Origin: Macrostomum lignano
Lineage: Eukaryota
DNA length: 64,000 nucleotides
Reading direction: 5' to 3'
NCBI GenBank assembly: GCA_002269645.1
Contig: NIVC01002323.1
Coordinates: 62,001-126,000, forward strand
Shown here: piece by piece, positions 684-44,760 of the stretch
Layout of the letters: every line of letters begins with the position of its first letter
Position numbering within the stretch: position 1 is the stretch's first letter
Made by a program: the position numbers and the translations under genes
Notes under the pieces: generated by a model
The model's database searches: none
The model's input: only the letters and a program-made list of their open reading frames with translations
Told to the model about the DNA's origin: nothing

Positions 684-1822
684 ATGAATCAACTGCTGGC
701 ATTCCTAACAGTTGCCTTGACAACAACTTCTGCTGCTGTCATCCTAAATGAGGTGCACAGCAGCAGCTGGTCGGGCGGTCAAATCCGCCACTTCCTCGTC
801 TCCTCCATCAACCAAGCCAGCGATGTGCTGCAGTGCGCTGCACAGGCTGCCAAGCACCTGCTCGCTCACCAGCTGCTGGTCTTCATCCCTCGAGACGGTG
901 CTCAGCAGCCCCAGTGCATCGTGGGTGAGTGAGTCCTGGCTGCATGCTCGATGCCTTAAACCTGATGAAGCTGCTCACCCAGCTGAGCTCATTCGCATTC
1001 CAGCAAACCGAAGTGGCGCTGTGTGTCGCAGACTGACGCCTCACACTCACCAGTCTCCGTGCTGCATCAGGGTGAGTAGCAAGCGTGCACTGACTCACCT
1101 GACAGCCAGGTAACTGACAGCACTTGCCTGACCGCAGCTCTCAATGCCTCACTGCAGGTGTTTGTGACGTCACTCAGCGACTGCTGGATCAGCATCCAGC
1201 GTCGGGTGGACAACTCGACAGACTTCTATCGCAACTGGACCGAGTACGCAGCCGGCTTCGGAGAGGGAGCCCACACGAACCACTGGCTCGGTGAGTGCAG
1301 TGCAGTGCGGTCATGACGGTATTGATGCACTTTTTGATAGCGCTGGCCTCCTGTGGCTGTGAGCTGCTCAGCATTGAGCTGTGCTTGACAACTGCAGGTC
1401 TGCGAGCTGTGCACTCTCTGACCTGGCCGTCTGGTCGAGCACTTCGCATGCGAATGAGGCTGTGGAATGGCACGGAGTTCTGGGCCGACTACTCCAGCTT
1501 CTCCGTGGCCAGCGAGGCCGACGAGTTCCGGCTGAGCATCTCGGGGTTCTCCGCCAGCCACCCTGGCGTTGGAGACTGCATGGCCTTCCACAATGGCATG
1601 AAGTTCAGCACACACGACAAGGACAATCACGCATCGAGACGGAACTGCGCCAAGAAGTTCCGCGGAAGTTGGTGGTACTCTGCATGCCACAAGACGAATC
1701 TAAATGGTTTGTACTTTTATCCGCCCGCTGCTTTGCACACGGAAGAGTTCGCCGTGGGAATCAACTGGTACTTTCCATTCGGCTTCCTATATTCACTCAA
1801 AGAAATAGAGCTGCTCGTCTGA
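684..1822 (+). CDS. Secreted fibrinogen-related domain (FReD) protein, copy 1, 4 exons, 311 aa
   Basis: Exons 684-924, 983-1071, 1110-1290, 1398-1822 with GT-AG introns of 58, 38 and 107 nt join in frame (936 nt). Hydrophobic N-terminus MNQLLAFLTVALTTTSA. FReD motifs IQRRVDNSTDFYRNWTEYAAGFG, HWLGL, FHNGMKFSTHDKDN, GSWWYSAC, NLNG, GINW. Confidence 0.92.
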
Positions 1823-2108
1823 GTGGAGTTTACTGGATTCTGGCTATCTTTTTGGAACCCGAATAGTATAGCGTTGCGTAATTTGTGCAACGGGTGCATC
1901 AAAATAAATAAATAAATAGCTCGTAAATACGAGAGTAAATAGCGAATCCAGATACGAAAATTAGCCGTACGTGCTTACAATGTCATGATTAGAAATCGAA
2001 GCCTAAAATTATGAAATATATATTTTATCAGTGTATTTTTTGCCTACAGTGTATTATTTATCTACAAATAGCATAATTGTAGATAAATAGTTGTGCTTAT
2101 AGCCGGCT

Positions 2109-4562
2109 ACAAAGGCAAGATCTCGGCGCCGTGGTGGAACCCGGAGCTGGGGAAACTCAGGCGGAAGGCCAAAAGCCTCCATCACAGTGCATGAAGACCG
2201 GGACCCTGAGGATTCTCTGGAGGATCAGGAGGACCCAGGAGCACATTCTTCCCGAGGGTATCCACTGCTAGATCGGAACCCAACCCAACAAGATTAAATC
2301 ACTCGTGCAGTCAGAACCTTCAAGCTTTTCTTATCTCCTGGTCCCGACGGTATCTACCCTGTTCTCCGTGAAGTAGCCAAGATACCCTCGTTCTTAGACT
2401 TACCCGCAATTTATCCAGCAGGCCTTTATCCAGCTGGGGTATGTGCCCAAGTGCTGGACTGAAGCTCGGGTAGTCTTCATTCTCAAACCTGGGAAGGGTG
2501 ACTACCAAAGCGTCAAGGCCTTCCGGCCAATTAGCTTAACGTCAGCAATGCTTAAGCTGACTGAGTGGCTTACATGTATTCTCTGGCGGCTGCTTTCTTG
2601 CGAACTGACAGCAATGCCCCTCAGCAATCATCAGCACGCCTTCCGTACCTGGAGGTCGACTGACAGCGCCCTGCATGCGATAGTCGAGAAGATTGAACGG
2701 GCGGTACTGGGTGACGGTTACACCCTGGCTCTTTTTCTCGACATTGTTGGCGCCTTCGACAACGTTATCTTTGAAACGTTTCAGAGGGCCCATCAAAATC
2801 GCAAAGCTCACGCTACCCTCATACGGTGGATCATGTACATGATCTCCAACCGTACGGTCACTGCCCAACTTCTTGGACAAACTGCCTCCGCCAGAGTCTG
2901 TAAGAGTTGGACCCCAAGGCGGAGTCCTCACCCCGACGCTCTGAAACCTGGTCATGGACGCTCTTCTGGGCGACTCCCGACCTGATCCCGTCTTCAAAGT
3001 CGGGTATGCTGACGACGTCACTGCCATTGTGGCAGGGCCGTCCCCCAGCACGCTCAGGGATCTGATGCAGAGCTTTATCCGCAAAGCAGAATCCTGGGCC
3101 AATGACAACGGTTTGGAACTCTCTGAGCCCCAAAGCTGTTGCCATTATGTTCACCAACCGAATACGCTGAATAAGGCCTCTGCAGCTATTCGGCAGAAAT
3201 ATTGTCTTCTCGCAACAGACCAGATGTCTCGGGGTCATACTAGACCACGGCTCAACTGGTCCTTCCACGTGAAAGCAAAAGCCAAGCGTGCCTCAGCCAT
3301 CCTGGCCCAGCTCGGTGGGCACTTGGCACTTCCTGGGGTTTATCCCCAAAGCGGCTTTGGTGGATCTACACTTCCGTGGTTAGACCTTCCATTAGGTACG
3401 CTTATGTTGTCTGGGTCAGCGCCACCCAGGTCAATAGCCATGCAGATTTGCTCAACACGATCTAGGGCAAGGCGTGTAGGCTTATCTGCAATGCCACCAG
3501 GTCCACGCCCTTTGCTGGGGCCTTCCTTGATCTACCGCCACTCGACCTCTTCGTCAGGGGTGAGGCGGCTAGAGCGACGCGGTGTTTACTTGATGCCGGC
3601 TTCGAATTCCTCTACATGAGGGCAGGTTGAGGGCACCTGCTAAGCGGAACCTCGTCCCGCATAGCGACCTGTGCATCAACTTTCTCAACGAGTTTCAGGC
3701 CAATCGCGTCTTCACCGATGGCAGTGCCTCAACGCTCAACCTGAGACAACGCTACTCCGTAGCTATCGACCCGCGTGACACCATCAATGACCACTAGAAC
3801 CCTGGTGAGCTCCATTGCTACACCGACGGTTCTAAGCAGTCAGTCAACACCGGCTTTGGTGTTGGGATCTTCCTGAACGGGCGGGTCATCGCAACCCACG
3901 CTCAGTACACTGGGGTCAACTTCAGTGTCTTCCAAAATGAAGTTCTCGCCATCAGCTCTTGCAATACAGAGCTTCTCGCCACTGGCGTATCCGGTAGAAC
4001 ATCATTTTCCATTCGGACAGCCAAGCTGCCTTGTACGTCATCAGTAGCTGTAGTACCAATTCTGCTACAGTCCTCGACTGTCAAACTCCTCAACATGTTG
4101 GGTTCCACCAACAAAATCACCCTTAAGTGGGTTCCGGGGCATGTGGGGATCCGAGGGAATGAGTTGGCTGACGCCCTTGCAAAAGTTGGTGCCTCCGGCT
4201 TCTCTCTCAGTCCCGAACCCCTTGTCCCGATTCCTGGCTGTGTCATCGACTCGCGCATCAAAGCGTGGATCAGGACACAGCACCGCTCGACCTGGTCGAA
4301 TTGTATTCCATGCAGGCAATCCAGAGGCGCTGTCCCTCATCCCTCTCACCAGCTCCGGAAGCTCCTCTTGCGCCTCTCGCAAAGAGACATCCGGGCTGCC
4401 AACATGACCCTCTCAGGTCACGACTGCTTCTCGAGGCACCAGTACTTGCAGGGCAATACCACCAACGTCATCTGCAGTTTTTGCAACTCAGGTGACGAAA
4501 CCGCTGAACATTTCGTCAGCATCTGTCCCGCCTTCATGCGAGCCAGACTCACTTACCTTGGG
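2109..4562 (+). mobile_element. LINE A, 5' part: 5'-truncated non-LTR retrotransposon (RT + RNase H + C-terminal Cys/His motif; R1/LOA-like), frameshifted
   Basis: PWWNPEL (~2130), FRPISLTS, QHAFR, FLDIVGAFDN, GYADD, RNase H CYTDGSK and WVPGHVGIRGNELADALAK, CSFC..ETAEH...C. Homology with the FReD2 3' flank (gtgcttatagccggct) stops at 2108, marking the 5' edge. Clade assignment is from motif recall only. Confidence 0.88.
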
Positions 4563-4710
4563 TGTGACGGTGGACTTTTCTTTGTGCCACCCCATTTTTG
4601 ATAAGTCTATAAATAGACCTGGTGCGCGTTAGAGGGCGATACTTGTTTTCTTGGTTTTGGCTCAGTTAGGAGCCTTGGACAATCAATCTCATTCTTATTT
4701 ATTTACAAGA

Positions 4711-8727: not shown

Positions 8728-11700
8728 TTAACTCAAAAATAGGCTCGCAGCCAAATTCCCAGCCTCCTCGTCATCGATATCTTTGGGCTGATGCAATTCG
8801 CGCCGCAGCTTTTCTGTCTCTAATTCGAGCTTCTGGCAGCGCAGTTCGGATTCCCGAAGTTCCATTCGTAATTTCATCAGCTTCAGCTCACGAACTTGCT
8901 CGTCCCATTCTAGTTCTTGCCGCTGTCGCTTCAATGTCCTACTGCAGCCGGTGCGATCAGTCATCAATAGATTTTGTGTCGAAGAGTCTGAATTGATTTG
9001 CTGCTGCTGTTGTTGTTTGCGGAAGGTGGTCTAGGACTGCCTATGCAGGCAGTCCAAGAACCTAGCCACCAGATCGCCATCGGCCAAGTCCTCCAGTTGG
9101 TGTAGGTCCGTCGCGTGCCGAGCTCCGGCCAGGGCCGGACATTCGAGGAAGTGATCCTTGTCTTCTAAGAGGTCGCACCGGAGGCATCTGCTATCCTCCC
9201 TAGTGCCTATTCGGTGCTGATAGTACGCCGTAGAAGGATCGTGACCGGCACGCATTTGAGCTATGGAAACCTGAAGCGCGCGAGGGCGAGCAGGCATCGA
9301 GGGGGTCTTGCTGTAGACCCGCTTCAGCCGGTCATTCAGGAGAGGCTTATACTTGATGAGACGGCGTATGCGGCTTCGGGCGGCCTCGATGTCGATCCCT
9401 AGAGGGTCCTGGGGGAGCAGACAGGCGTTCTTTGCCTCGGTGTCGGCTCTCTCGTTACCGGGAGTCCCAGAATGACCTGGGATCCACTGTAGGACCACGT
9501 CGGCGTGGCTCTCCACCTGCGTCAGCTTGCGCTTGAGCGACTCGAGCAGAGGGTTCAGGGAGTGCTGCCGACCTTTGAGCGCCGCAATGGCCGAATGGCT
9601 GTCGGTGAGGATCAGGGCAGAGTCCTGCTTAGTCTCAAGGATGTGGTCCAGGGCGAGGTGCAGAGCTGAGAGTTCAGCTTGGAACGAGCTACACCAGCGC
9701 CCGGTAGCAGCTCCCTCAATCCAAATCACCTGGCCCGAAGTAGGGGCGACTGCCACACAGGCTGCCCCTCCATTCTCCGTTCCTTCGGATGCAGATCCGT
9801 CGGTGAAATAGGGATCTTGCGGTCGCCCCCTGATTTAATGGTGTCTTCCGTCGCCGACCGCCTGGTCTCTGGCGGATCGTTCCTGGAGATCGGCTGAGTC
9901 AGGTGTTCGCAAAGGGTGACCCGATCCTCGATTCTCGGAAGCCAGGGCTTGTTCTGATCCAGTTCGATTCCCGGCGTGGGCAATGCAGAATCTGCTCGGA
10001 TTCCAGCTTGGCTTGATCCCGGAGACCTTTGTTGGCTTTGAGCCTGCGCCGGCCTTGGTCTTCGCAAAGGCTGCGCCAAGGGTCGTGGGCTGGCCGCCGG
10101 AGGGCCTTCTCGACAGCCAGCAGGGCTCTTCTGTGTCCTTCAACGGAAATGGGAACGGTTCCGAGTTCGAGGTAGACGGCCTCCTCTGGAGTGGATTTAG
10201 GGAGGCCGGCCACGATTCTGAGCGCTGCCCGTTGAGCCCGTTCGAGTTCGTTCAACCGGCTTTTGGATAGCCAAGGTAGCCAGGCCGCAGCCGCGTGCTA
10301 TATGACGGATTCGACCATGGCGGTGTACGTACGCATCAGCAGCTTGCGGTCCCAGCCCCAGCTCCTTTGAGCTAGCGCTCTCACGATGTTGGTGCGCTTG
10401 GCCATCTTTTCTTTGACCGTTTTGACTTGTTGAGCAAAGATGAGTCCACGGTCAATCCAAATACCGAGGTATTTGAGCGACTCTGTGAAGCGAAGTTGGG
10501 TGCCGGCTAGACGGAGATCAGGTGGCCGGTCTAAGTCGGCCCGGTTCCTAGAGAAGAGGCACGCCTGGGTTTTAGCTGGATTAACCAAGATGCGGAGGTC
10601 TCTGGTCCAGGTTTCGATGAAGTCCAGGGCGCTCTGCAGCTTACTGGTGAGGTTCTGAAGGCTACTGTCTGTAGTCCATAGGCAGAGGTCGTCTGCGAAT
10701 CCTCCAAGTTGAACTTCAGTTTCAGGGAAGCCAGTCCAATCATTGACGTAAAGGAGGAATAGAACCGGGGAGCACACCGCTTCCTGGGGAACTCCACTGG
10801 TGATACGGCGCCACTTCCCGGTGGTGTTGCCGATTTTGGCACAGATTGTTCTACCTTCCAGAAAATTGGCTAGCCAATGCGTCATACGATCGGGCATGTC
10901 TTCGTCCATCATCCGATTAATGAGCTTGTCGTGCCAAACCGTGTCGAAGGCTTTGGAGCAGTCGAGGGCGGTAGCCGCGGTCTTGAGGGGAGGTTTGCGT
11001 TCCCACCCATCTTGGATCGATTGGACCAGACGGGCGACCTGCTCCTCACAGCTGCGGCCTCTTTGGAAGCCCGCTTGCCAGTGTTTGAGGATGTTGAAGG
11101 TCTCAATCCAATGAAAGAGGCGGTCTAGGACCATGCGTTCCATAATCTTGGCGCAGATCGATGTGAGACTGACAGGTCTATAGCTATCGCAGCTCTGCGG
11201 GTCTTTACCGTCCTTCAGGAGGGGCACCACTATAGCTTGTTTCCAGATGCCAGGGCAGTGGCCAATCCTCCAGTTACGGTTGAAGAGTTTGAGCCAGGCT
11301 TCCGTCCAGCTTTCTGGCAGGTGCTTGAAGAAGGCTGCCTCTATCTTGTCCGGCCCTCCTTTCTTGTTGATGTCCAGGTGGTCGATAGCTCTCACGAGTT
11401 CACTCTTGGTGAAGGGGGCGTCATAGTCGCTGGCATGCGGGTGATAGGCACTCAGACGATTGGAGGTGAGTTTCTTGTAGCGGCGATCACCCGGTTGTTG
11501 GTCGGGTCTGCAGACCTTGGCAAAGTGTCTGCCAAACGCTTCGGCCTTTTGTCTGCTGCTGCTGTTGCTCTTGTTGTCGCTCTTGTTGCTGCCGTTGCTG
11601 CTGCATGGTCTACTGTTCAGCAGGGCTCTCTGGAATCTCTAGTTTTTTAACTGCAGGCGAGTCGCGACCAAGAACGTCAAGAATGCAGGCCTCCAGTTCA

Positions 11701-12447: not shown

Positions 12448-15279
12448 GTGCTTGGAAGAGAGACACGCGAGGGGGTCCACGGCCAACCCCTCTCAGCCAA
12501 TGAGAGAAAAGGGGTGGGTGCGCCGCACCGCCCAATGCCCCAGTCAGAGGGGGACGAGAGGCTTTTCGCGGAGGGCATCGTGGCTAGCGGCCTTAACCAG
12601 ATCGATCCGAAGCCGGCTGGCAAAACAAAATCAAGAATAACTAGAGCCCAAGCGCGTAAACAACGGAAAGAGTACAACAAAACGAGACAAGAAACTGCAA
12701 TGCGCCCTATAACATTGGATTACGAGGCGGCCCTACAAGACGACAAGGAGTTGCAAGCAGCGGTACAAACCAACGACTTGGTGAAGGAAAGCCGCGGCAG
12801 ACTGTTTCGGCATCAAGCAGCTGGAGAGGACCAACTGGTGCTTCCGAAGGCTCTGCGTGCTTCGTCTACGAAGGACTTCGTAGCAACGTGCGACAAGTGT
12901 CAGAAGACGGCTCGAGTCCCAGGCAATCACAAGGTACCACTAGTCCAAGTGCCTGGAGTGGAGGAGGCCTTCACCAAAGTTATCATCGATATCAGTGGAC
13001 CGTATACGAGGACTGCGAGTGGTCACCAGTACATCCTGTCGATTATCGATGCGGCTACTCGATTCCCCGAAGGAGTCCCGCTGCGAAAGATCGACGCTGA
13101 GTCTGTAGCGAAGGCATTGGTGGACTGCTTCGTGAGGACTGGATTCCCGAGGGAGATCCAGAGCGATAAGGGTACTAACTTTTCATCAGCACTGCTGCAG
13201 GCCCTGTACCGGTGTACCGGGGTCGAGGGCATCCAGTCGACGCCGTACCATCCGCAAAGCCAGGCGTTGGTGGAGAGGTTCCACGGCACTCTCAAGAATA
13301 TGTTGAGGAGACTACCAGCTCGCGAGAAAAAGAAGTGGGACCAGTACCTACCGTATCTGCTGTTCGCCATTCGGGAGGTGCCCAACGAAACAACTGGCTT
13401 CTCCCCATTCGAACTTTCGTATGGACGCACTGTGCGGGGACCGCTAGATCTACTGCGGCAGACCTGGGATGAGCAGCTCTCCGAAGAGAAGAAGGACATC
13501 ATCTCGTTCGTGCTGGCTCAGAGAGACCGACTGCGGGCTGGCCAGGAAGCGGCACGGAACAGCGAAGAGCTAGCACGGAAGCGTCAGAAACTCTGGTACG
13601 ACCGGCAGTCGCGGGAACGAGAGTTGCAGCCCGGAGATCAGGTGCTGCTGCTGCTGCCATCGTCATCCAAGAAGCTTCACGCTGAATGGCGCGGTTTCTA
13701 TGAAGTACTGGAGAGGTGCAGCGATGTGAACTACCGGATCCGGATGGGCCCTGCGACAAACACGTTTCATGTCAACCTGCTTAAGAAGTACAATTCACGA
13801 GAGGCGGTTTTGATGCAGCTTCCAGCGGCAGCTACGAGTGCTCCTGAGTTGTCCGAACATCTGACACCTGCCGAGAGGGATCGTCTCCTGGAGCTGGTGC
13901 AGGACTTCGCGGGCGTCTTCAGCGAGACCCCGGGGAGGACTGACCTAGTGGAGCACCGTATCCGGACGACATCTGACCGCGTAGTGCGCATCCGGCCGCG
14001 ACGGGAGCCGCAGGCGCATCGGCAGGTGCTCCAAGAGGAGATTCAACGCATGCTGGACCTCAGGGTGATCGAACCATCTGACAGTGACTACTGCTCCCCG
14101 GTCTGTCTGGTGGCCAAGAAGGACGGCTCAGTCCGGTTCACTGTCAACTGCAAGGCGCTGAATGAGCTGGTGGCCTTCGACTCCTATCCGATGAAGAACA
14201 TCGAGGACCTACTGGAGCGGGTCGCCAAGGCCAAGTTCAGATCTAAGCTAGACTGCTGCAAGGGCTACTGGCAAATTCCACTGTACCAGGATTCAAAGCG
14301 ATTGACGGCTTTCGCGGCCTGTGGCAAGCTGTATCAATTTATTGTGATGCCCATGGGCTTAAACTGCAGCAGCGCGACGTACCAGAGGCTCATGGACAAG
14401 CTGTTCCAAGGGCTGGACAACACGGACTCCTACATCGATGACATCGCCGTGTTTAGCGCGACATTCGAGCAGCACGTCAAGGACCTGAGGGAAGTATTCG
14501 GTCGCCTTAAGGCTGCCGGTCTAACGGTGCAACCCCGAAAGTGCTACCTGGGCGGCAACTCTGCTGACTACCTGGGTTTCAAGCTCGGCGGAGGTGAGAT
14601 CGGTACAAGCGAGGACCGAGTGCGGACAATCACGGCGCTGGCTCAGCCCCGGACCAAGGCTCAGCTGCGATCTGTGCTCGGAGTGCTCAACCACTACCGT
14701 CGGTTCGTGCCCGATTACTCAGAAAAGGTGGCGGCCCTGACGGACCTCACGAAGAAGTCGGCACCCGATGACCTGACGGCGGCCTGGGGAGAGCAGCAGA
14801 CGCGAGCCTTCGAGACTGTGAAATCTCTGCTGGCGAGCGAGCCGGTGCTGCGCGCGCCGGACTACAGTCGGCAGTTCACCTTGGAGACTGACAGCTCGGA
14901 GACTGGGATCGGCGCGGTGCTAACGCAAGAGTTCGAGGACGGCATCCATCCCGTGCTATTCGTATCTCGGCGGCTGACTTCGGCGGAGCGGAGCTACGCG
15001 ACGATCGAGAAGGAGTGCCTCGCCGTGCGCTGGGCGGTCGAGAAGCTGCGGCACTACCTGCTAGGCCGCCGGTTCGTCATCAAGTCCGACCATAAGCCGC
15101 TGCAGTACCTGCAGATGGACCACGCCAACCCACGACTCCAGCGGTGGGCCTTCTATCTGTCCGGCTATGACTACGAGATCCAGTACCAGCCAGGCGAAAG
15201 CAACACGGTGGCCGATGGTCTCAGCAGGATCTGGGCTAGGGACCGACCAAGTGATTTAGTGACCGACCAAGTGATTTAG
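12448..15279 (+). CDS. pol remainder: integrase, then reverse transcriptase, then RNase H
   Basis: rve core (IDISGP, IIDAATRFP, QSDKGTNF, TPYHPQSQALVERFHGTLK), RT (YPM, KLDCCKGYWQ, MPMGL, YIDD), RH (LETDSS, ERSYATIEKECLAV, SDHKPL). The His-His half of the IN zinc finger appears deleted in frame (LPKALRAS..CDKCQ). Removing the Harbinger restores DAPST|VLGR in frame with the protease. Confidence 0.92.
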   Translation: MLGRETREGVHGQPLSANERKGVGAPHRPMPQSEGDERLFAEGIVASGLNQIDPKPAGKTKSRITRAQARKQRKEYNKTRQETAMRPITLDYEAALQDDKELQAAVQTNDLVKESRGRLFRHQAAGEDQLVLPKALRASSTKDFVATCDKCQKTARVPGNHKVPLVQVPGVEEAFTKVIIDISGPYTRTASGHQYILSIIDAATRFPEGVPLRKIDAESVAKALVDCFVRTGFPREIQSDKGTNFSSALLQALYRCTGVEGIQSTPYHPQSQALVERFHGTLKNMLRRLPAREKKKWDQYLPYLLFAIREVPNETTGFSPFELSYGRTVRGPLDLLRQTWDEQLSEEKKDIISFVLAQRDRLRAGQEAARNSEELARKRQKLWYDRQSRERELQPGDQVLLLLPSSSKKLHAEWRGFYEVLERCSDVNYRIRMGPATNTFHVNLLKKYNSREAVLMQLPAAATSAPELSEHLTPAERDRLLELVQDFAGVFSETPGRTDLVEHRIRTTSDRVVRIRPRREPQAHRQVLQEEIQRMLDLRVIEPSDSDYCSPVCLVAKKDGSVRFTVNCKALNELVAFDSYPMKNIEDLLERVAKAKFRSKLDCCKGYWQIPLYQDSKRLTAFAACGKLYQFIVMPMGLNCSSATYQRLMDKLFQGLDNTDSYIDDIAVFSATFEQHVKDLREVFGRLKAAGLTVQPRKCYLGGNSADYLGFKLGGGEIGTSEDRVRTITALAQPRTKAQLRSVLGVLNHYRRFVPDYSEKVAALTDLTKKSAPDDLTAAWGEQQTRAFETVKSLLASEPVLRAPDYSRQFTLETDSSETGIGAVLTQEFEDGIHPVLFVSRRLTSAERSYATIEKECLAVRWAVEKLRHYLLGRRFVIKSDHKPLQYLQMDHANPRLQRWAFYLSGYDYEIQYQPGESNTVADGLSRIWARDRPSDLVTDQVI

Positions 15280-15898: not shown

Positions 15899-16878
15899 CA
15901 GCCTCAACAACAATAGCTGTTAAACGTCGATCCAGCATCAACCATCAAGGATGGACTGATGAAAATTGGCACAAGAATTAGCACAGCTTTGCGACCTGGA
16001 GAGACTACTAACAACAGTAGCAACAGAGAGGCTGCAGCTTCACCAAACAGATCGAACAGAAAGTCCATGCCTAAGGAAAACACCAGCAAGGCAAACAGCA
16101 GCTGCCCCGGTGCTGCTGAATCAACCTGTCGCCAAGCCGCTGCTGGTTTTAAAACTGGTTTTGCGGAATTATAGTTACCGGAGCTGCATTTGAATACTAA
16201 TTATCGTCTTTCTTGTATCTTTTATTTGCTGTTGCAAAACATCTTGTAGAGACGGACAAGCACTTGAAGGGAAACAAGTCTTCAAACTGCTGGCTACTGT
16301 CATTATTTTTATTCCTAAATTTGCTCAATTTGGCAAGTTGATTTGATAAGGAAAAAGAAAAAGGCTTGAGAAATACCAGGCGAGAAGAAAAAGCCTACGG
16401 TGACATGCCAGTCAAAACTGCCAGTGAGAAAGGGTTGTTGACAGCAGGAGGTTTATACACAGCTTAAATTATCAATTCTGTAGAATATGATGATTGCTAA
16501 AAAAGCAAGTAATACGAGTAAACTAATAAAAAATGCACTTCAGAGGCCAGATGCTCCTATAACAAATTGCTACGCTTGTCATAAAAGGTTTCTATCATGA
16601 CAGCTTCACTAGCTTCGACTAACACAGAAGAGCTAAAAAATAATCAATAAAAAGTAAAGATCCAACAGTGTCAGCAAAACAACATATTCTTGGCACAAAA
16701 AGAGGGCCAATAACAAACAAGGATGTTAGCAGAACACGCAGCGAATGGCAGCAAATTCTGATAAAAACGGGACTCCAGCAAGCTCCGAAGAGCTGCAGAA
16801 CTCCAAGGACTTCGAGCGTAGACTGCAGCTGCAGCACAAAATCGCGCCATTCAGCTACACAGTTTCAACTTCCCAACA

Positions 16879-18017
16879 ATGAATCAACTGCTGGCATTTC
16901 TAGCAATTGCCTTGACAACAACTTCTGCTGCTGTCATCCTAAATGAGGTGCACAGCAGCAGCTGGTCGGGCGGTCAAATCCGCCACTTCCTCGTCTCCTC
17001 CATCAACCAAGCCAGCGATGTGCTGCAGTGCGCTGCACAGGCTGCCAAGCACCTGCTCGCTCACCAGCTGCTGGTCTTCATCCCTCGAGACGGTGCTCAG
17101 CAGCCCCAGTGCATCGTGGGTGAGTGAGTCCTGGCTGCATGCTCGATGCCTTAAACCTGATGAAGCTGCTCACCCAGCTGAGCTCATTCGCATTCCAGCA
17201 AACCGAAGTGGCGCTGTGTGTCGCAGACTGACGCCTCACACTCACCAGTCTCCGTGCTGCATCAGGGTGAGTAGCAAGCGTGCACTGACTCACCTGACAG
17301 CCAGGTAACTGACAGCACTTGCCTGACCGCAGCTCTCAATGCCTCACTGCAGGTGTTTGTGACGTCACTCAGCGACTGCTGGATCAGCATCCAGCGTCGG
17401 GTGGACAACTCGACAGACTTCTATCGCAACTGGACCGAGTACGCAGCCGGCTTCGGAGAGGGAGCCCACACGAACCACTGGCTCGGTGAGTGCAGTGCAG
17501 TGCGGTCATGACGGTATTGATGCACTTTTTGATAGCGCTGGCCTCCTGTGGCTGTGAGCTGCTCAGCATTGAGCTGTGCTTGACAACTGCAGGTCTGCGA
17601 GCTGTGCACTCTCTGACCTGGCCGTCTGGTCGAGCACTTCGCATGCGAATGAGGCTGTGGAATGGCACGGAGTTCTGGGCCGACTACTCCAGCTTCTCCG
17701 TGGCCAGCGAGGCCGACAAGTTTCGGCTGAGCATCTCGGGGTTCTCCGCCAGCCACCCTGGCGTTGGAGACTGCATGGCCTTCCACAATGGCATGAAGTT
17801 CAGCACACACGACAAGGACAATCACGCATCGAGGCGGAACTGCGCCAAACAGTTTCGCGGAAGTTGGTGGTACTCGGCGTGCCACAGGACGAATCCAAAC
17901 GGTTTGTACTTTTATCCGCCCGCTGCTTTGCACACGGAAGAGTTCGCCATGGGAATCAACTGGTACTTTCCATTTGGCTACTTCTATTCAGTCAAGGAAA
18001 TCGAGATGCTCATCTGA
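16879..18017 (+). CDS. Secreted FReD protein, copy 2, 4 exons
   Basis: Exons 16879-17119, 17178-17266, 17305-17485, 17593-18017. Collinear with copy 1 at an offset of 16195, same motifs, intact frame. Confidence 0.92.
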
Positions 18018-21575: not shown

Positions 21576-21739
21576 TCAATATGATAGTGCCGAGGGTGGC
21601 AGAACTTTGTACGGATTGAGAATCCCTTGGGGATCCAGCAGTCGCTTGATGCCCGCCATCACGGATACAGCTGTTGGGCTCTTGCAGTGACCTGCGGATG
21701 GCAGAAATAGTGCTCTGACTGGCTGACTCTGTCTGTCTA

Positions 21740-21806
<67 letters not shown>

Positions 21807-21877
21807 TAGTGTCTGTCTGTCTGTCTGTCTGTCTGTCTGCCTGTCTGTCTCTCTGTCTGCCTGTCTGTCTGTCTGCC

Positions 21878-21949
<72 letters not shown>

Positions 21950-21962
21950 AGTCAGTCAGTCA

Positions 21963-22017
<55 letters not shown>

Positions 22018-25000
22018 AGTCAGTCAGTCTGCCTGTCCGCCAGCCCTCACCCAGATACGCGCTCCGCTTCCAGCCCAGGCCGTGCTCAGCGCTGATGGAG
22101 CCCCGCCGCCGGGCCAGCCAGCCGTAGACGAAGGCCTCCACGCGGGGCCACAGGCCGCAGGCGGCAGCCCCGGCCGGATCCGCCGTCACCACCAGGTGCA
22201 AATTACCGTCGCCAAGGTGACCAAAACCGGCCACGCGAATGACGCAATCGAGCTGGCCGAACTCGGCTCTGGTGGCCAACACAAGCCGCTGCATGTCCAG
22301 CCTGTCGGACACTGCCGCATCGAACTGCATGTAGCCGCCGGCCGGTCCGCAGTCGGCCACCAGCGCCTCAAATGCGCGCTCTCTTAGCGCCCAGATGGCG
22401 CCAAATTGGCGCGAATCGTTTGATATAACGGCGTCGATGGAGCCGGCGCTTTCTGACGAGATTTTGTCATACTTTAAGTGCATTTTTTATCAACCTCTGA
22501 TCCTACATGTATGACCGATCTGTATATATCTCTACAAAAATCTCTAGATCTATAGATCTATAGATCTCTATTTAAGCTTTTGAATATGAATCTAAAAGTC
22601 TTTGGAGAGGCATATAGCTCATTATAAAACCTGAAGATCGATAATGATAGTCTCTAGATATCACTACTCAATGTCTCTAGATCTTTCTAATCAATGTCTC
22701 TAGATCCTTCTTATCAATGTCACTAGATCTCGCTAATCAATTTATTTAGATCTCTCTGACCGAAGGTTCTAGATATCTCTAATCAAATTCTACAGATCTC
22801 TTTAATAATGTCTTTAGATCTTTCTAATCAAGTTCTTTAGATCATGTCTTTGGACTTGACTGATATCTTCTATATACCTCTATCTAAATGTCTAGATTGA
22901 TTGGTCTAAAATCTATATCCTACGTTCGTACATCCTTCCAGATACGAACCCTATCAACTTCATAAAGTGCCCTCCTATACACGGTTACTCACCATGGTTG
23001 AGAGATACCAGGCATTCCAAAAACTTATCCAACTTGCCGGCATCATTCGAGCCGCTAGCATCGCAAGAGGCGGTTTCAACCAGGGCGTAGAACTCACTGC
23101 TGCCGCTAAGCGGACAATTCAGTTTGAGATTATCAGACACGGCCGACATAGTAGCGGCGTCCATGACCTCAAATGCGGACAAAGTCTCGGCCAGGGTACT
23201 GCGAGCGGCCGAGAATAGATGAAGCACCGACTGCGGATATTAAGATCATGGCGGATGATGCAGAGGAACTTGAACCCTAACTCTATTCTGGAATGGCAAC
23301 CCAGGAGTTCAAGGCAACTCTTAGGATTGCTGGACCGACTGACTATCTGTGGCTTTCACTTCTAACCCACGGCTCAGAGGAACTGGTTGATGTCATCCTC
23401 TGACCTTGACAGACAGTTAAGTGCCCAGTGTGACCTTTGGGCACTAGCTCGTTGATAAGACCAACCCCTGTTTCGATTTCTACATTAGTTTAGCCAGTCC
23501 CCAGGGCACAGGGAGTGTACATGCCTGACGGTTAGAAAGACTACAAGGCAGGGGTCAGGAAACTTTCTACCAGATAAGAGTGGAAAGGAGAGGGAATGGG
23601 GGAGAGAGGAGAAAGAAGAGACGACAGAAGAGAGAAAAGAGAAATGAAAGGAGTAGAGACAAGAGAAGAGATCAGAGGAGAGAGGAGAGGAGAGAAAAGA
23701 GAGGGAGAGAACTGAGAAGACACAAACCCTGAGCGGGCCGGATTGCTATTGTGACATTTCAAAGATCCCGAGGGGGTTGGATAGAGGCTCCGCTGGACGG
23801 AGTTTGCCGACCCATGGTCTAAATCGTTGTACACCCTGTGTGCGCACTCAGGAGTCAGCGGAATGGCGGAATTGCCTCAGCGCTGTTTGTAGGACGATGT
23901 CGCCGAAGGCGTTGCGCCAGGGTGCTGGCAGAAGTTTATTTTCTTTCTAAGAAACAACGAACACCCATGGGCAAACCTGAAAGCTATCGCAGCCAATCAG
24001 AACCAACCGGACATTAGCAGGCCTAGGCGGACACGCCAACGTCACTTTAGTCAACACGCCCAGCGTGCCTTCGCTGCCAATCATCAGCTGTACCAGCCTA
24101 CTCTCGTCCTCGTTAACTCTACCGCAGTCAATCAACTCTCCGCTAGCCAGCGCAACACGAACTGAGCACGAAGCGAACCGTAGCGTAGCACACGAATTCC
24201 GCCAGCGTTGGTGGATAAGTTGCCGCCAATCTGGCAGCTACCTTTAGCGGCAAGATCTAGCGGCACCAGTGAGACCGTGCTCAGACAGGTGAGAGTCCAG
24301 ATCGGCCAGTACGCAGCCCGCCTCGGCAACCACTAAGCCTGCCACGGCGTCAATCTTGGAGTTCGATTCGAGTTGAGTAAAAATTATGACAAACTGACAT
24401 AGAAGCTAGATAAAACTGACATGGAGTGAAGCTAGATAATGGCGACAAATTGACATGAGTGAAGCTAGATAATGACGACAAATTGCATGGAGTGAAGCTA
24501 GATAATGGCGACAAATTGACATGGAAGAAGAAAATGATGGAACAAGATGGAGTGGCAGATAATGACATGGAGTGAAGCTAGATAATGGCGACAAATGACA
24601 TGGAGTGAAGAATGGCACAAATTGACATGGAAAGAGATGGAGACAGGAGTGACACATGGAGTGAAGATGATGGCGACAAATTGACATGGTGAAGATGATG
24701 GCGACAAATTGACATGGAGTGAAGCTAGACAATGGCGACAAACTGACATGGAGTGAAGACAATGGCGTCAAATTGACATGGAGTGTGACAATGGCGTCAA
24801 ATTGACATGGACATGGAGTGAAGAGTAAAGACAATGGCGTCAAATTGACATGGAGTGAAGACAATGGCGTCAAATTGACATGGAGTGAAACTAGATAATG
24901 GCGACAAACTGACATGGAGTGAAGACAATGGCGACAAATTGACATGGAGTGAAGATGATGGCGACAAATTGACATGGAGTGAAGACAATGGCGACAAATT

Positions 25001-28000
25001 GACATGGAGTGAAGACAATGCGACAAATTGACATGGAGTGAAGACAATGGCGACAAATTGACATGGAGTGAAGACAATGGCGACAAATTGACATGGAGTG
25101 AAGACAATGGCGACAAATTGACATGGAGTGAAGACAATGGCGACAATTGACATGGAGTGAAGATGATGGCGACAAATTGACATGGAGTGAAGATGATGGC
25201 ACACAAACTGACATGGAGTGAAGATAATGGCGACAAACTGACACTACTCAATGTCTCTAGATCTTTCTAATCAATGTCTCTAGATCCTTCTTATCAATGT
25301 CACTAGATCTCGCTAATCAATTTATTTAGATCTCTCTGACCGAAGGTTCTAGATATCTCTAATCAAATTCTACAGATCTCTTTAATAATGTCTTTAGATC
25401 TTTCTAATCAAGTTCTTTAGATCATGTCTTTGGACTTGACTGATATCTTCTATATACCTCTATCTAAATGTCTAGATTGATTGGTCTAAAATCTATATCC
25501 TACGTTCGTACATCCTTCCCAGATACGAACCCTATCAACTTCATAAAGTGCCCTCCTATACACGGTTACTCACCATGGTTGAGAGAGACCAGGCATTCCA
25601 AAAACTTATCCAACTTGCCGGCATCATTCGAGCCGCTAGCATCGCAAGAGGCGGTTTCAACCAGGGCGTAGAACTCACTGCTGCCGCTAAGCGGACAATT
25701 CAGTTTGAGATTATCAGACACGGCCGACATAGTAGCGGCGTCCATGACCTCAAATGCGGACAAAGTCTCGGCCAGGGTACTGCGAGCGGCCGAGAATAGA
25801 TGAAGCACCGACTGCGGATATTAAGATCATGGCGGATGATGCAGAGGAACTTGAACCCTAACTCTATTCTGGAATGGCAACCCAGGAGTTCAAGGCAACT
25901 CTTAGGATTGCTGGACCGACTGACTATCTGTGGCTTTCACTTCTAACCCACGGCTCAGAGGAACTGGTTGATGTCATCCTCTGACCTTGACAGACAGTTA
26001 AGTGCCCAGTGTGACCTTTGGGCACTAGCTCGTTGATAAGACCAACCCCTGTTTCGATTTCTACATTAGTTTAGCCAGTCCCCAGGGCACAGGGAGTGTA
26101 CATGCCTGACGGTTAGAAAGACTACAAGGCAGGGGTCAGGAAACTTTCTACCAGATAAGAGTGGAAAGGAGAGGGAATGGGGGAGAGAGGAGAAAGAAGA
26201 GACGACAGAAGAGAGAAAAGAGAAATGAAAGGAGTAGAGACAAGAGAAGAGATCAGAGGAGAGAGGAGAGGAGAGAAAAGAGAGGGAGAGAACTGAGAAG
26301 ACACAAACCCTGAGCGGGCCGGATTGCTATTGTGACATTTCAAAGATCCCGAGGGGGTTGGATAGAGGCTCCGCTGGACGGAGTTTGCCGACCCATGGTC
26401 TAAATCGTTGTACACCCTGTGTGCGCACTCAGGAGTCAGCGGAATGGCGGAATTGCCTCAGCGCTGTTTGTAGGACGATGTCGCCGAAGGCGTTGCGCCA
26501 GGGTGCTGGCAGAAGTTTATTTTCTTTCTAAGAAACAACGAACACCCATGGGCAAACCTGAAAGCTATCGCAGCCAATCAGAACCAACCGGACATTAGCA
26601 GGCCTAGGCGGACACGCCAACGTCACTTTAGTCAACACGCCCAGCGTGCCTTCGCTGCCAATCATCAGCTGTACCAGCCTACTCTCGTCCTCGTTAACTC
26701 TACCGCAGTCAATCAACTCTCCGCTAGCCAGCGCAACTTCCAATCCACGAACTGAGCCGCGAAGCGAACCGTAGCGTAGCACACGAATTCCGCCAGCGTT
26801 GGTGGATAAGTTGCCGCCAATCTGGCAGCTACCTTTAGCGGCAAGATCTAGCGGCACAGTGAGACCGTGCTCAGACAGGTGAGAGTCCAGATCGGCCAGT
26901 ACGCAGCCCGCCTCGGCAACCACTAAGCCTGCCACGGCGTCAATCTTGGAGTTCGATTCGAGTTGGGACAGTTTTAGAGTAAAAATTATAGTTGTGACAA
27001 ACTGACATGGAGTGAAGCTAGATAATGACGACAACCTGGCATGGAGTGAAGCTAGATAATGGCGACAAATTGACATGGAGTGAAGCTAGATAATGACGAC
27101 AAATTGGCATGGAGTGAAGCTAGATAATGGCGACAAATTGACATGGAAGTGAAGAAAATGGCAACAAACTGACATGGAGTGAAGCTAGATAATGGCGACA
27201 AATTGACATGGAGTGAAGATGATGGCGACAAATTGACATGGAGTGAAGATGATGGCGACAAATTGACATGGAGTGAAGCTAGATAATGGCGACAAACTGA
27301 CATGGAGTGAAGACAATGGCGTCAAATTGACATGGAGTGAAGACAATGGCGTCAAATTGACATGGAGTGAAACTAGATAATGGCGACAAATTGACATGGA
27401 AGTGAAGACAATGGCGACAAACTGACATGGAGTGAAGACAATGGCGACAAATTGACATGGAGTGAAGATGATGGCGACAAATTGACATGGAGTGAAGCTA
27501 GATAATGGCGACAAACTGACATGGAGTGAAGAGTAAAGACAATGGCGTCAAATTGACATGGAGTGAAGACAATGGCGTCAAATTGACATGGAGTGAAACT
27601 AGATAATGGCGACAAACTGACATGGAGTGAAGACAATGGCGACAAATTGACATGGAGTGAAGATGATGGCGACAAATTGACATGGAGTGAAGACAATGGC
27701 GACAAATTGACATGGAGTGAAGACAATGGCGACAAATTGACATGGAGTGAAGATGATGGCGACAAATTGACATGGAGTGAAGACAATGGCGACAAATTGA
27801 CATGGAGTGAAGACAATGGCGACAAATTGACATGGAGTGAAGACAATGGCGACAAATTGACATGGAGTGAAGATGATGGCGACAAATTGACATGGAGTGA
27901 AGATGATGGCACACAAACTGACATGGAGTGAAGATAATGGCGACAAACTGACACTGAGTGAAACAATGGCGCCAAGGAGACATGGAGTTCAAGGTGTGAA

Positions 28001-37334: not shown

Positions 37335-38473
37335 TTAGCGGACAAGAATCTCGAACTCCTGCATCGAGTAGCCAGCACCGAATGGAAATTTCCAAACGAT
37401 TCCATTGTTAATGGCGGTTTCCAGCGCCTCAGGTGGGTTGTAGTACAAACCATTAGGACTGCACATGTAGCAGCTTGAAAACCACCAGCCTCCTTTGTAG
37501 TAGGTGCTGCAGTGACCTGAACTACCATCGTTGTCAGAATCTAAGGTGCTGAACATGGCTCCATTGTGCGAAGCGAGGCTGTCGTACATCGCGGGATGGC
37601 TGCCATGGAAACCGGAGACATTCAAACGGAACTTGTCGGCCTCGCTGGCCACGGAGAAGCTGGAGTAGTCGGCCCAGAACTCCGTGCCATTCCACAGCCT
37701 CATTCGCATGCGAAGTGCTCGACCAGACGGCCAGGTCAGAGAGTGCACAGCTCGCAGACCTGCAGTTGTCAAGCACAGCTCAATGCTGAGCAGCTCACAG
37801 CCACAGGAGGCCAGCGCTATCAAAAAGTGCATCAATACCGTTATGACCGCACTGCACTGCACTCACCGAGCCAGTGGTTCGTGTGAGCTCCCTCTCCGAA
37901 GCCGGCTGCGTACTCGGTCCAGTTGCGATAGAAGTCTGTCGAGTTGTCCACCCGACGCTGGATGCTGATCCAGCAGTCGCTGAGTGACGTCACAAACACC
38001 TGCAGTGAGGCATTGAGAGCTGCGGTCAGGCAAGTGCTGTCAGTTACCTGGCTGTCAGGTGAGTCAGTGCACGCTTGCTACTCACCCTGATGCAGCACGG
38101 AGACTGGTGAGTGTGAGGCGTCAGTCTGCGACACACAGCGCCACTTCGGTTTGCTGGAATGCGAATGAGCTCAGCTGGGTGAGCAGCTTCATCAGGTTTA
38201 AGGCATCGAGCATGCAGCCAGGACTCACTCACCCACGATGCACTGGGGCTGCTGAGCACCGTCTCGAGGGATGAAGACCAGCAGCTGGTGAGCGAGCAGG
38301 TGCTTGGCAGCCTGTGCAGCGCACTGCAGCACATCGCTGGCTTGGCTCATGGAGGAGACGAAGAAGTGGTGGACTCGACCGCCCGACCAGCTGCTGCTGT
38401 GCACCTCATTGAGGATGACAGCAGCAGAAGTTGTTGTCAAGGCAATTGCTAGAAATGCCAGCAGTTGATTCAT
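37335..38473 (-). CDS. Secreted FReD protein, copy 3, 4 exons
   Basis: Exons 38473-38233, 38174-38086, 38047-37867, 37759-37335. Intact frame. C-terminus SHNGAMFSTLDSDND..CSTYYKGGWWFSSCY..PNG..GIVWKFPFG. Confidence 0.92.
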
Positions 38474-39944
38474 TATTGGGAAGTTGAAACTGTGTAGCTG
38501 AATGGCGCGATTTTGTGCTGCAGCTGCAGTCTACGCTCGAAGTCCTTGGAGTTCTGCAGCTCTTCGGAGCTTGCTGGATGGAGTCCCGTTTTTATCAGAA
38601 TTTGCTGCCATTCAATGCGCGTTCAGCTAACATCATTGTGATTGGTCTGCAGCTCTTGGCCCTCTTCTTGTCATCAGTGTTGCACACTGTCTATACTCTA
38701 TAGAATCTCTCTGGCACTGTTCTTCCCGGAGCGTCAGTCAATGTGTCTACAAGTAGCTTTCTTTGTTTAAGTTAGAACCCCTAAATTTTCTACTCTAGCA
38801 AATTTGAAGTATACTTGCATAGCCGCTTGAGATGAGAACTGAGCTTTAGAGCTGTGCGGAGAGTTTGCTCAAAATTGTTGTTGGAAAATTGTTTTGTGTT
38901 AGGGGCAAGGGCGTTCACTGCTGCTCAAATCTGTCGTTCAATTCGTCTTTGTTTACCCCATCTTACAATATCGATCTAACAAAAATGCAAGGTTTTCTAA
39001 ATATTTTTTCTAACGCGGATGCACTCTTAATTTCTTTCCCGTCGTTAGGCATGTACACATGCCTACATTCTGAGCATCTAAGTAGTGCCGCAGTTTAGGA
39101 TAGACATGGATAAAGCTGATTGATCCATGTAGAGATGCACTCATGTTTCACTTTAGTTTCATTATAGAGCAGAGTAGAGTGATGTGTCCTTCAAGAGCAA
39201 AAGCTCGGGTCGTATATTAGTATTAAATAAATTATGCATTCATTCTGGCGTCGAAGGCACTATTTAATTTTTTGCGTCCTGAAGCAAATTTATTGATTTC
39301 CATCCTTAGACTTATTGAGTTCAGAAGCTTACGCCCAATTATTCACGTAGAACGTATCGGATATACCTTCTGCTAGCATATCAATGGTTTAATATTGGAC
39401 AGAGTCATGCAAATATATTTAAATCTAACATATACCCAGTCGACTAACACTTGAACCTAAAATATGAATCCTATATCCACGGAAGCCCGAGGGTTCTAAG
39501 ACATTTTCCAACTTCTGGGATGTATGTTTGCCGAAACACATTTGTCTAATGTAGTAACCAATAAGCAGCCAAGTGACAGACTGTCAATTTTGTGCTCACT
39601 CAAGGCTTTAAATTTAAAAGAGCTAATAACACGCAGTGGCCAGTTCCATTTGGAACCAGTTTCATGCTACTTGGTTACACACGAATTCACACGAATTTCA
39701 TGGATTTGATGAAGTTGGAACAATTCAATTTTAAGGGTAGCTTCAGGAATTTGTTGCTTTAAATATCCACAGGCAACGTTGGAAATAGAATAGCAAATGC
39801 GCAACAATAAAATTCAAGAAAAATGGAGCCACTTGAGAGCCACAAAAGAGAATACGGAAACTCAGCAAGAAAACATAGCAAAAAAGCAGAAGTAAAGTTC
39901 AGATCTGATCATTTCTCTACCCACATTTCTCAAAGGACTTCGCA

Positions 39945-41077
39945 ATGCATAAAGCACTGCTCCATCTGATTCTTCTGCACGCGATCAGTGTTTCAGGGCA
40001 GATTTCACTGCATGAGGTGCACAGCAGCAGCTGGTCGGGCGGTCGAGTCCGCCACTTCTTCGTCTCCTCCATCAGCCAAGCCAGCGATGTGCTGCAGTGC
40101 GCTGCACTGGCTGCCAAGCACCTGCTCGCTCACCAGCTGCTGGTCTTCATCCCTCGAGACGGTGCTCAGCAGCCCCAGTGCATCGTGGGTGAGTGAGTCC
40201 TGGCTGCATGCTCGATGCCTTAAACCCGATGAAGCTGCTCACCCAGCTGAGCTCATTCGCATTCCAGCAAACCGAAGTGGCGCTGTGTGTCGCAGACTGA
40301 CGCCTCACACTCACCAGTCTCCGTGCTGCATCAGGGTGAGTAGCAAGCGTGCACTGACTCACCTGACAGCCAGGTAACTGACAGCACTTGCCTGACCGCA
40401 GCTCTCAATGCCTCACTGCAGGTGTTTGTGACGTCACTCAGCGACTGCTGGATCAGCATCCAGCGTCGGGTGGACAACTCGACAGACTTCTATCGCAACT
40501 GGACCGAGTACGCAGCCGGCTTCGGAGAGGGAGCCCACACGAACCACTGGCTCGGTGAGTGCAGTGCAGTGCGGTCATGACGGTATTGATGCACTTTTTG
40601 ATAGCGCTGGCCTCCTGTGGCTGTGAGCTGCTCAGCATTGAGCTGTGCTTGACAACTGCAGGTCTGCGAGCTGTGCACTCTCTGACCTGGCCGTCTGGTC
40701 GAGCACTTCGCATGCGAATGAGGCTGTGGAATGGCACGGAGTTCTGGGCCGACTACTCCAGCTTCTCCGTGGCCAGCGAGGCCGACAAGTTCCGTTTGAA
40801 TGTCTCCGGTTTCCATGGCAGCCACCCGAGTCTGAGAGACTGCATGGCCTTGTGCAACGAATACGATTCAGACAACGACCTTAGGTCTCAACAGAGTTGC
40901 AGTATGCTCTACAAAGGAGGTTGGTGGTACGCAAATTGTCACTAAACCAACCCAAACGGCCTGTACTTCACACCGCCCTCGGCTCTGAGCACAGCGTCTT
41001 TTGCTTCTGGTATTAACTGGTATTTGCCATTCGGCTATTACTACACCATGAGGGAGTTTGAACTACTCGTTTCCTAG
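39945..41077 (+). pseudogene. FReD copy 4, probably pseudogenised
   Basis: Exons 39945-40188, 40247-40335, 40374-40554, 40662-41077. Different signal peptide (MHKALLHLILLHAISVSG). Short in-frame loss of the NGxxFST motif (MALCNEYDSDND). TAA at 40943-40945, followed by in-frame [23 protein letters not shown]-stop. Confidence 0.88.

Positions 41078-43771: not shown

Positions 43772-44760
<989 letters not shown>

Follow-up and report, generated by a model that had tools for sequence, protein, structure and literature searches.

Introduction

Partial concerted evolution, in which gene conversion homogenises most of a gene but leaves a conversion-resistant peak of divergence, has been described for the human red and green opsins, for RHD/RHCE and for protocadherin clusters (PMC3924837), while 'mosaic divergence' is the term applied to tandem HMA4 paralogues in a recent preprint (bioRxiv 10.1101/2025.10.29.685298). 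Here we analyze a 64-kb stretch of the genome of the flatworm Macrostomum lignano (GenBank assembly GCA_002269645.1, contig NIVC01002323.1, positions 62,001 to 126,000 of the forward strand; hereafter the window, to which all coordinates refer) that harbors four genes for proteins with a fibrinogen-related domain (FReD), built from a nearly invariant core, introns included, and from strongly diverged 3' parts, referred to as tails. Like the opsin, RHD/RHCE and protocadherin cases, these genes show very low divergence, introns included, in one part and high divergence in the region of specificity, the boundaries are abrupt, and the copies are tandem or inverted neighbors within tens of kilobases. 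Unlike in those cases, protection covers the entire 3' third of the gene together with its 3' flank instead of being limited to a small peak at a few positions; synonymous sites of this region are saturated, and one and the same core is combined with at least six lineages of tails. The process is therefore a known one and not a new mechanism; it is the gene family and the phylum that are new for this pattern.

Among fibrinogen-related proteins, a comparable system is that of the FREPs of the snail Biomphalaria glabrata, which combine immunoglobulin superfamily (IgSF) domains with a FReD and whose diversification is reported to involve point mutation as well as gene conversion (PMC12074976). 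Both are lophotrochozoan multigene families of fibrinogen-related, lectin-like proteins for which gene conversion is invoked, whereas the N-terminal IgSF region of the snail proteins has no counterpart in the Macrostomum genes. Furthermore, conversion in the snail has been proposed to create diversity, partly in somatic cells, whereas in the flatworm it would remove diversity from the core, and the diversity of the flatworm tails, unlike that of the snail FREPs, is old, germline-encoded and conserved. By definition, the FReD of gastropod-type FREPs (VIgL) is preceded by one or two IgSF domains (PMC12074976), and ficolins have an N-terminal collagen-like (G-X-Y) region before it (PMC13358205). 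The flatworm proteins resemble M-, L- and H-ficolin and tachylectin-5A in sequence and fold, in the Ca2+ motif FST-D-x-D-N-D, in the Cys231-Cys244 pair and in the CH and NGLY motifs, but differ from ficolins in that they have no collagen-like region and that their N-terminal approximately 100 residues give no canonical A-subdomain alignment. Domain-restricted conversion in a cluster of immune lectin-like genes is likewise found in the KLRC/NKG2 paired leukocyte receptors, though with the polarity reversed, the ligand-binding domain being homogenised there and the signaling part kept distinct (PMC3210942). A literature search retrieved no paper on the present FReD family in Macrostomum.

Results

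Four FReD genes share a uniform core between divergent ends

Self-BLAST of the first gene copy and tblastn with all family proteins located exactly four FReD gene copies in the window (c1 to c4), and the tblastn search revealed no orphan core or tail fragments in it that might have served as donors. Exon models were built by hand and then translated, which gave the following features.

684-1822, plus strand: c1, FReD gene, 288 amino acids, exons 684-924, 1004-1071, 1158-1290 and 1398-1822
748-1522, plus strand: homogenised core in c1, starting in the 3' part of exon 1, spanning the three introns and reaching into the first third of exon 4
1523-1822, plus strand: divergent tail of c1, type T1, comprising the last B-subdomain strand, the P subdomain and the C-terminal strands
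16879-18017, plus strand: c2, FReD gene, 288 amino acids, whole-gene duplicate of c1, with a core (16943-17717) identical to that of c1
38473-37335, minus strand: c3, FReD gene, 288 amino acids, core 37635-38409, tail type T4 at 37335-37634
39945-41077, plus strand: c4, FReD gene, 242 amino acids (premature stop), core patch 40012-40786, tail T5
489-683 (c1, plus strand), 16717-16878 (c2) and 38474-38669 (c3): upstream/5' untranslated region (UTR) block of about 92-94% identity, absent from c4
37594-38409, minus strand: arm 1 of the c3/c4 inverted repeat, equivalent to c1 coordinates 748-1563
40012-40827, plus strand: arm 2 of the same inverted repeat

The three introns of c1 (79, 86 and 107 nt in the hand-built model, all GT-AG) sum to 272 nt. 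All copies have an alternative in-frame AG acceptor in intron 1 (925-1003; acceptor 982/983, adding the seven residues AELIRIP) and another in intron 3 (1291-1397; acceptor 1340/1341, adding 19 residues), which are used variously by the UniProt models, whose intron totals come to 194-251 nt. Of these models, P0020 equals c1 from DVLQC to the C-terminus except for the AELIRIP insertion, which corresponds to the alternative intron-1 acceptor, P0021 equals c4 from DVLQC onward, including this insertion, a c4-specific Q>L replacement and the same stop, and the tails of P0005 and P0028 are identical to that of c3.

Pairwise differences were counted per segment in a MAFFT alignment of the four copies, with c1 as the coordinate reference. 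Over 708 bp of the core (815-1522, intron sequence included), the four copies displayed four variable sites: c1 and c2 were identical, while c3 differed privately at 1271 and 1315 and c4 at 844 and 963. Two of these sites fell within the 272 intron nucleotides (0/272 differences between c1 and c2, 1/272 each for c1/c3 and c1/c4) and two within the 436 exon nucleotides, so that introns were not more variable than exons (p = 0.64), whereas noncoding flanks were 7.7-57% different (Fisher p = 2e-6 to 1e-52 against the core introns). For most pairs the uniform tract started at about 748, the segment 748-814 occurring as two haplotypes, one in c1/c2 and the other in c3/c4. At its 3' side, identity dropped at 1523-1531, inside exon 4, and 14 of the 43 positions in 1523-1565 distinguished c1/c2 from c3/c4. 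The near-identity of the four cores across their introns, and its collapse inside exon 4 at SEAD(E/K)FRL, had both been noted in a preliminary description of the window and were confirmed by these counts; the intron total given there, 203 nt, does not agree with our exon model.

Since introns are as uniform as exons, constraint at the protein level is excluded as the cause of core uniformity. This leaves extreme purifying selection that would include the introns, exerted for example through an overlapping functional element and without any recombination. The core protein is indeed somewhat better conserved than the tail between two subfamilies of the family, A and B, which are described below (70% versus 51-63%). 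However, between c1 and c2 all 272 intron nucleotides and the synonymous sites are invariant next to a promoter/5'UTR block that is 7.7% different, a scan of the whole window found no match to any Rfam family of structured RNA, the subfamily B core diverges by 30% at the protein level, and the defective c4 has kept its homogenised core. We therefore regard selection of this kind as extremely unlikely.

Breakpoints of the core were located by a Max-chi2 scan and by direct run-length probabilities, which we chose over a Sawyer-type test because the core has almost no polymorphic sites. The scan returned chi2 values of 484-539 for pairs including c3 or c4 and of 163 for c1/c2, as compared with a maximum of about 27 over 200 permutations, and placed the boundaries at 748-750 and 1526-1530 (1558 for c3/c4). 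Between c1 and c2, a run of 811 bp (712-1522) was free of differences, for which ln P is about -63 at 7.5% flank divergence. The 3' ends of the shared stretches were staggered, at approximately 1523-1531 for c1/c2 against c3/c4, approximately 1563 for c3/c4 and 1638 for c1/c2; in the wider family, the UniProt model P0003 retains c1-type sequence up to about the HNGM codons, and P0026 is a mosaic of a P0027-type proximal tail and a P0003-type distal tail.

A uniform tract of this length might also be a product of assembly or polishing, with truly diverged cores made alike by collapse or by multi-mapping reads. M. lignano is a repeat-rich neopolyploid that is difficult to assemble, and a repeat of 0.8 kb exceeds the length of short reads, so that polishing could erase some copy-specific single-nucleotide differences. 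Yet the copies lie in four different, unique contexts rich in transposable elements and satellites and in both orientations, private differences persist in c3 and c4, the boundaries are sharp and specific to the pair compared, and polishing could not bring a divergence of about 45% down to 0.3%. In addition, P0020, P0005 and P0021 reproduce c1, c3 and c4, although these models perhaps do not come from an independent assembly. Taken together, an artefact of this kind seems very unlikely.

The core of c4 and of c1/c2 is an internal patch

In contrast to c3, whose 5' flank and signal peptide are like those of c1/c2, c4 has a 5' flank and a signal peptide of its own: it differs from the other copies at 38 of 64 positions in the signal-peptide exon and at 112 of 195 in the 5' flank and cannot be aligned with them upstream of 748, whereas only 7/779 differences separate it from them between 748 and about 1530, and downstream of that point it is again unalignable. 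With a promoter region, a part of the signal-peptide exon and a tail of its own, c4 thus carries its core as a patch inside the gene, bounded by one breakpoint on either side. Such a patch is a signature of non-crossover conversion and cannot be produced by one crossover. The core shared by c1 and c2 is a patch as well, because the invariant 712-1522 lies between flanks that are 7-20% diverged (differences: 5' flank, 14/182; tail, 19/257; 3' flank, 35/177). Homology of these two copies spans 519-2108 and ends there; each copy is embedded in unique flanks rich in transposable elements, and no segmental duplication extends beyond the gene. Finally, c3 and c4 lie head-to-head, and the arms of their inverted repeat are 816 bp long, 99.1% identical and separated by a spacer of about 1.6 kb. 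Head-to-head inverted-repeat geometry favors intrachromosomal conversion.

These observations are probably best explained by interlocus gene conversion, that is, partial concerted evolution, of a tract of approximately 0.7-0.8 kb. The tract, its boundaries, its patch nature and the age and constraint of the tails are observations made here, while for the mode of repair and the role of selection in fixing the boundary we infer the following. Four old FReD paralogues would have had a core of about 0.7-0.8 kb overwritten repeatedly by ectopic, non-crossover conversion, a break in the core of one copy being repaired from another copy of the cluster in either orientation. Tracts would end where identity gives out, at the border with the 3' part that diverged long ago, and purifying selection on the tails (Ca2+ motif, acetyl-pocket residues) would weed out conversions that overrun into them. 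The outcome would be a constant N-terminal and B-subdomain core combined with several old, distinct P-subdomain tails.

The alternative in which duplication alone is at work, either chimeric or through unequal crossing-over, assumes that a recent 5' module, reaching from the promoter to the middle of exon 4, was fused once to each older 3' end. It would suit c3, whose promoter, 5'UTR and signal peptide are those of c1/c2 (15/195 differences in the 5' flank and 4/64 in the signal peptide), whose similarity is lost only at the 3' break and which could have arisen by a single crossover in exon 4. It does not account for the two breakpoints of the c4 core, for the whole-gene duplicates c1 and c2, which are 7-20% diverged on either side of 811 bp without a difference, or for endpoints that vary with the pair compared. 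Even for c3, the core is about 25-fold less diverged from c1 than the 5' flank (2/708 versus 15/195), hence a later event is needed anyway. Duplication alone is, in our estimation, improbable. The preliminary description had offered two mechanisms side by side, conversion of the core with old tails retained, and recombination of an amplified 5' module onto older 3' ends; the c4 patch, the c1/c2 patch and the staggered ends agree with the former, while the latter fails for c4 and for c1/c2 and may have contributed to c3. The term 'swapped' used there for the C-termini does not fit, because it is the core that was overwritten, while the tails do not move, a single chimeric duplication being possible for c3 alone.

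Two further ideas were rejected. Capture of the core by a transposon of Helitron or Pack type does not fit the setting of the cores, every one of which continues the reading frame of the matching exon parts on either side within a complete FReD gene, and assembly from cassettes in somatic cells, as for VLR or Ig genes, found no support in the sequence.

The tails are anciently diverged

From 1523-1531 onward, identity between tail types fell to approximately 56-60% for DNA and 49-57% for protein, with 97-112 differences per 241-253 aligned nucleotides in 1566-1822; between c1 and c2, protein identity of the tails was 90.5%. Between tail types, pS reached 0.69-0.87 and is thus saturated, dN was 0.32-0.45 and pN/pS about 0.3-0.4. 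The dN/dS of the tails, an estimate that had been proposed beforehand, pointed to purifying selection (0.20 for c1/c2, at a dS of 0.20), and neither dN/dS nor pN/pS detected diversifying selection in the tails of c1-c4. By these rates, the tails are old and under purifying selection and not fast-evolving. Divergence also continues past the coding tail, as the 3' flanks of c3 and c4 are unalignable with the other copies, which argues against exon-targeted hypermutation.

These data bear on the view that the four genes are recent whole-gene duplicates whose 3' ends either diverged very fast, by hypermutation or acceleration, or were overwritten by distant donors. In its favor, introns more conserved than coding sequence are the classical signature reported for conotoxins and snake-venom phospholipases A2 (PLA2), toxin families for which such hypermutation or acceleration has been proposed. 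Against it stand the unalignable 3' flanks of c3 and c4 together with the equally unalignable 5' flank and signal peptide of c4, a tail pN well below pS with dN/dS at 0.20, the window being free of donor fragments, and the example of subfamily B, in which an unconverted core is found at the same tail distance. We consider rapid divergence or replacement of the 3' ends highly improbable.

The preliminary description had missed that c4 is defective. Five codons are deleted in frame at about 40858, which takes GMxFS(T) out of the HNGxxFST motif, and further on the frame meets a premature TAA at 40943-40945; judged by its reading frame, c4 is truncated or a pseudogene. Since the frame stays open beyond this codon to the original TAG (41075-41077), the inactivation looks recent. 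Its core is homogenised in spite of the defect.

Core and tail depth disagree across the wider family

The comparison was extended to about 25 UniProt models at the protein level, which fall into subfamilies A and B. The core of subfamily A is 96-100% identical and is joined to at least six tail lineages, the UniProt models adding at least three tail types on the same core to those of the window.

Subfamily A, tail lineage 1: c1, c2 and P0001
Subfamily A, tail lineage 2: P0003, P0024 and P0026
Subfamily A, tail lineage 3: P0004, P0025 and P0027
Subfamily A, tail lineage 4: c3
Subfamily A, tail lineage 5: c4
Subfamily A, tail lineage 6: P0023
Subfamily B, outside the window: P0006, P0007 and P0029-32

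Tails of subfamily B (P0006) are 51-63% identical to those of A, which is the range of A tails among themselves (49-68%), whereas identity between the B core and the A core is no more than 70-71%. The check for incongruent core and tail histories, suggested with the preliminary description, thus uncovered a mismatch in depth: at the level of the predicted proteins, core depth and tail depth disagree across the two subfamilies, and subfamily B seems to offer a view of an unconverted core at equal tail distance. Members of subfamily B are at least 90% identical to one another, and their differences cluster in P-subdomain loops near the Ca2+ motif and the Cys-Cys loop (CM[AG][IRH]C, DI-xxx-SCSA-x-[YF]K and WY-xx-CH), which may reflect diversifying selection at the binding site.

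Base composition is compatible with gene conversion without being decisive. The GC content of core introns is 54-57%, versus 32-40% in flanking noncoding DNA (a contrast drawn without a genome-wide intron baseline), and GC at third codon positions falls from 78% in the core to 60-73% for the tails and to 38% for the signal-peptide exon; high core GC fits GC-biased conversion.

Several points speak against conversion as the sole explanation of the pattern: (i) the GC enrichment is explicable by codon usage or gene-body composition; (ii) paralogues were compared within M. lignano alone, whereas the classical expectation, cores grouping by species and tails by orthology, refers to sister species; (iii) the family-wide incongruence is derived from predicted protein models, some of them mis-spliced; (iv) the near-zero divergence of the core could be somewhat exaggerated by short-read polishing of a 0.8-kb repeat; and (v) the 5' flank of c3 is 6-8% different from those of c1/c2, the same level as between c1 and c2, and the c3 chimera could go back to a single unequal crossover or a chimeric duplication instead of a conversion. 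Because of this equal flank divergence, the 5' half of c3 possibly derives from one older event, which could have been a long conversion or an unequal crossover, with shorter later conversions bringing the core to 2/708.

As to why the core might be kept uniform, one may imagine that subunits encoded by different paralogues co-assemble through N-terminal and B-subdomain surfaces, giving a germline combinatorial lectin repertoire, although we hold this to be unlikely. If it were so, mixed oligomers would combine different P-subdomain pockets, conversion would preserve the fit of the assembly interface, and tracts that overrun now and then, as in the P0026 mosaic, would create new proximal-tail combinations.

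The genes encode ficolin-like FReDs with variable pocket residues

Assignment of the genes to the FReD family, made at first sight of the sequence, is borne out by profile, sequence and fold comparisons. The Pfam family Fibrinogen_C (PF00147) matched residues 92-286 of c1 with 171.2 bits (cut-off 22; E = 3.7e-50), c3 with 171 bits and the truncated c4 with 123.4 bits, and all four copies exceeded the cut-off by a wide margin. It was the only Pfam match at E ≤ 0.01, so that no IgSF domain was recorded, and neither a Pfam match to a collagen-like region nor G-X-Y repeats were present in residues 1-110. As the N-terminus is hydrophobic and both accessory regions are missing, the predicted products are FReD-only proteins of secreted type and neither ficolins nor gastropod-type FREPs. 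Ficolin recognition domains were the top matches in both sequence and fold: the closest sequence in the PDB was ficolin-1 (E = 1.4e-39, about 38-41% identity over about 175-190 residues), and the top Foldseek matches of an AlphaFold2 (AF2) model were all FReDs, led by M- and L-ficolin (E about 3e-18, TM-score 0.72-0.75). The model has a mean predicted local distance difference test (pLDDT) score of 57.9, with 78-92 in the B subdomain (80-92 in the blocks of residues 131-200) and 47-61 in the P subdomain; being of moderate quality, with its first 110 residues and part of the P subdomain unreliable, it served only to assign the fold and to locate the break in a strand.

At the N-terminus, PDB alignments begin at residues 97-112, the GGGWT motif is replaced by SDCWIS, and residues 1-110 have pLDDT below 40, which leaves a degenerate A subdomain as a possible reading. 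Neither the sequence nor the model of residues 1-110 of c1-c3 disclosed a recognizable A subdomain or oligomerisation domain. This region (684 to about 1180) contains five cysteines, plus one at the start of the FReD, and a long helix predicted with low confidence at residues 31-59.

The break falls inside a predicted beta-strand (residues 193-200, EFRLSISG). By a motif alignment to Y274-R275-L276 of fibrinogen gamma, it would lie about ten residues before the P subdomain, the start of which Yee et al. are reported to have placed at Gly287 of fibrinogen gamma in 1997. What varies is accordingly the last strand of the B subdomain together with the entire P subdomain and the strands at the C-terminus. 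The preliminary description had equated the divergent part with the P subdomain; the break does lie just ahead of the section that bears the Ca2+ motif, the Cys pair and the tyrosines of the acetyl pocket, but in mid-strand and not at a domain boundary.

In the alignment with ficolin-1, c1 retains FST-HDKDNH, C231...C244-H and NLNGLY, and all intact tails keep the Ca2+ motif FST-x-D-x-D-N-D, the Cys231-Cys244 pair and the CH and NGLY motifs. Tyr271 and Tyr283 of M-ficolin are essential to its acetyl/sialic-acid pocket (PMC13358205). As the top PDB match, 2wnp, is a Y271F mutant, the alignment column of Tyr271 is fixed. The residues found at the two positions are listed below in the order Tyr271, Tyr283.

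c1: F265, F277
c2: F, Y
c3: I, A
c4: F, Y
P0003: Y, Y
P0004: E, N
P0023: Y, Y
Subfamily B: Y, Y

Because these pocket residues vary between tails, the tails plausibly differ in ligand specificity. The proteins may act as lectins, and one may speculate on a role in immunity or allorecognition.

The locus presents an unusually clean case of domain-restricted concerted evolution, with about 0.3% divergence against synonymous saturation across a boundary of a few bases and on at least six tail lineages, and it could help to study what sets the boundaries of conversion tracts. It also introduces a previously undescribed FReD family in a flatworm that serves as a model of regeneration, with members that vary at the residues of ligand choice in M-ficolin. 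In practical terms, core probes or short reads cannot separate the M. lignano paralogues, which concerns annotation, mapping, RNA interference (RNAi) and in-situ hybridization; only the 3' UTR and roughly the final 300 coding nucleotides are specific to one gene.

DNA surrounding the FReD genes

The space between the FReD genes is filled with transposable elements, whose open reading frames (ORFs) include the pol of a long terminal repeat (LTR) retrotransposon (reverse transcriptase, RNase H and integrase), a non-LTR reverse transcriptase ORF together with a separate RNase H ORF, and a mariner/Tc1-like transposase. The retroelement and transposase ORFs are as follows.

12448-15279, plus strand: retroelement/transposase ORF
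9031-11395, minus strand: retroelement/transposase ORF
56898-57854, plus strand: retroelement/transposase ORF

Retroelement-like sequence at about 2110-4562 begins exactly where the 3' homology of c1 and c2 ends (about 2109). For part of it (3319-4562), an inverted copy of 89.9% identity is present at 50072-48831, where it overlaps an ORF that contains an RNase H domain (region 48831-50114). An ORF of 255 amino acids on the minus strand (19218-19985) gave a sub-threshold match to an intermediate-filament coiled coil (22 bits versus a cut-off of 40) and is probably a coiled-coil or low-complexity ORF.

Directly 3' of c4 lie satellite arrays (41552-43281, 43772-44762 and 45398-46844), composed of the 20-mer CTACCTGTCTCTTCTATGGC in 87 copies, (TGTC)n over about 1 kb and a second 20-mer in 71 copies; the long ORFs listed over these arrays are repeat artefacts. 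A (TCTG)n array at 21728-22037 is related to the (TGTC)n array. Lastly, a tandem duplication of about 2.6 kb (22662-25245 versus 25242-27955) shows 93.5% identity between its units, each of which ends in the 30-mer minisatellite GAGTGAAGACAATGGCGACAAATTGACATG.

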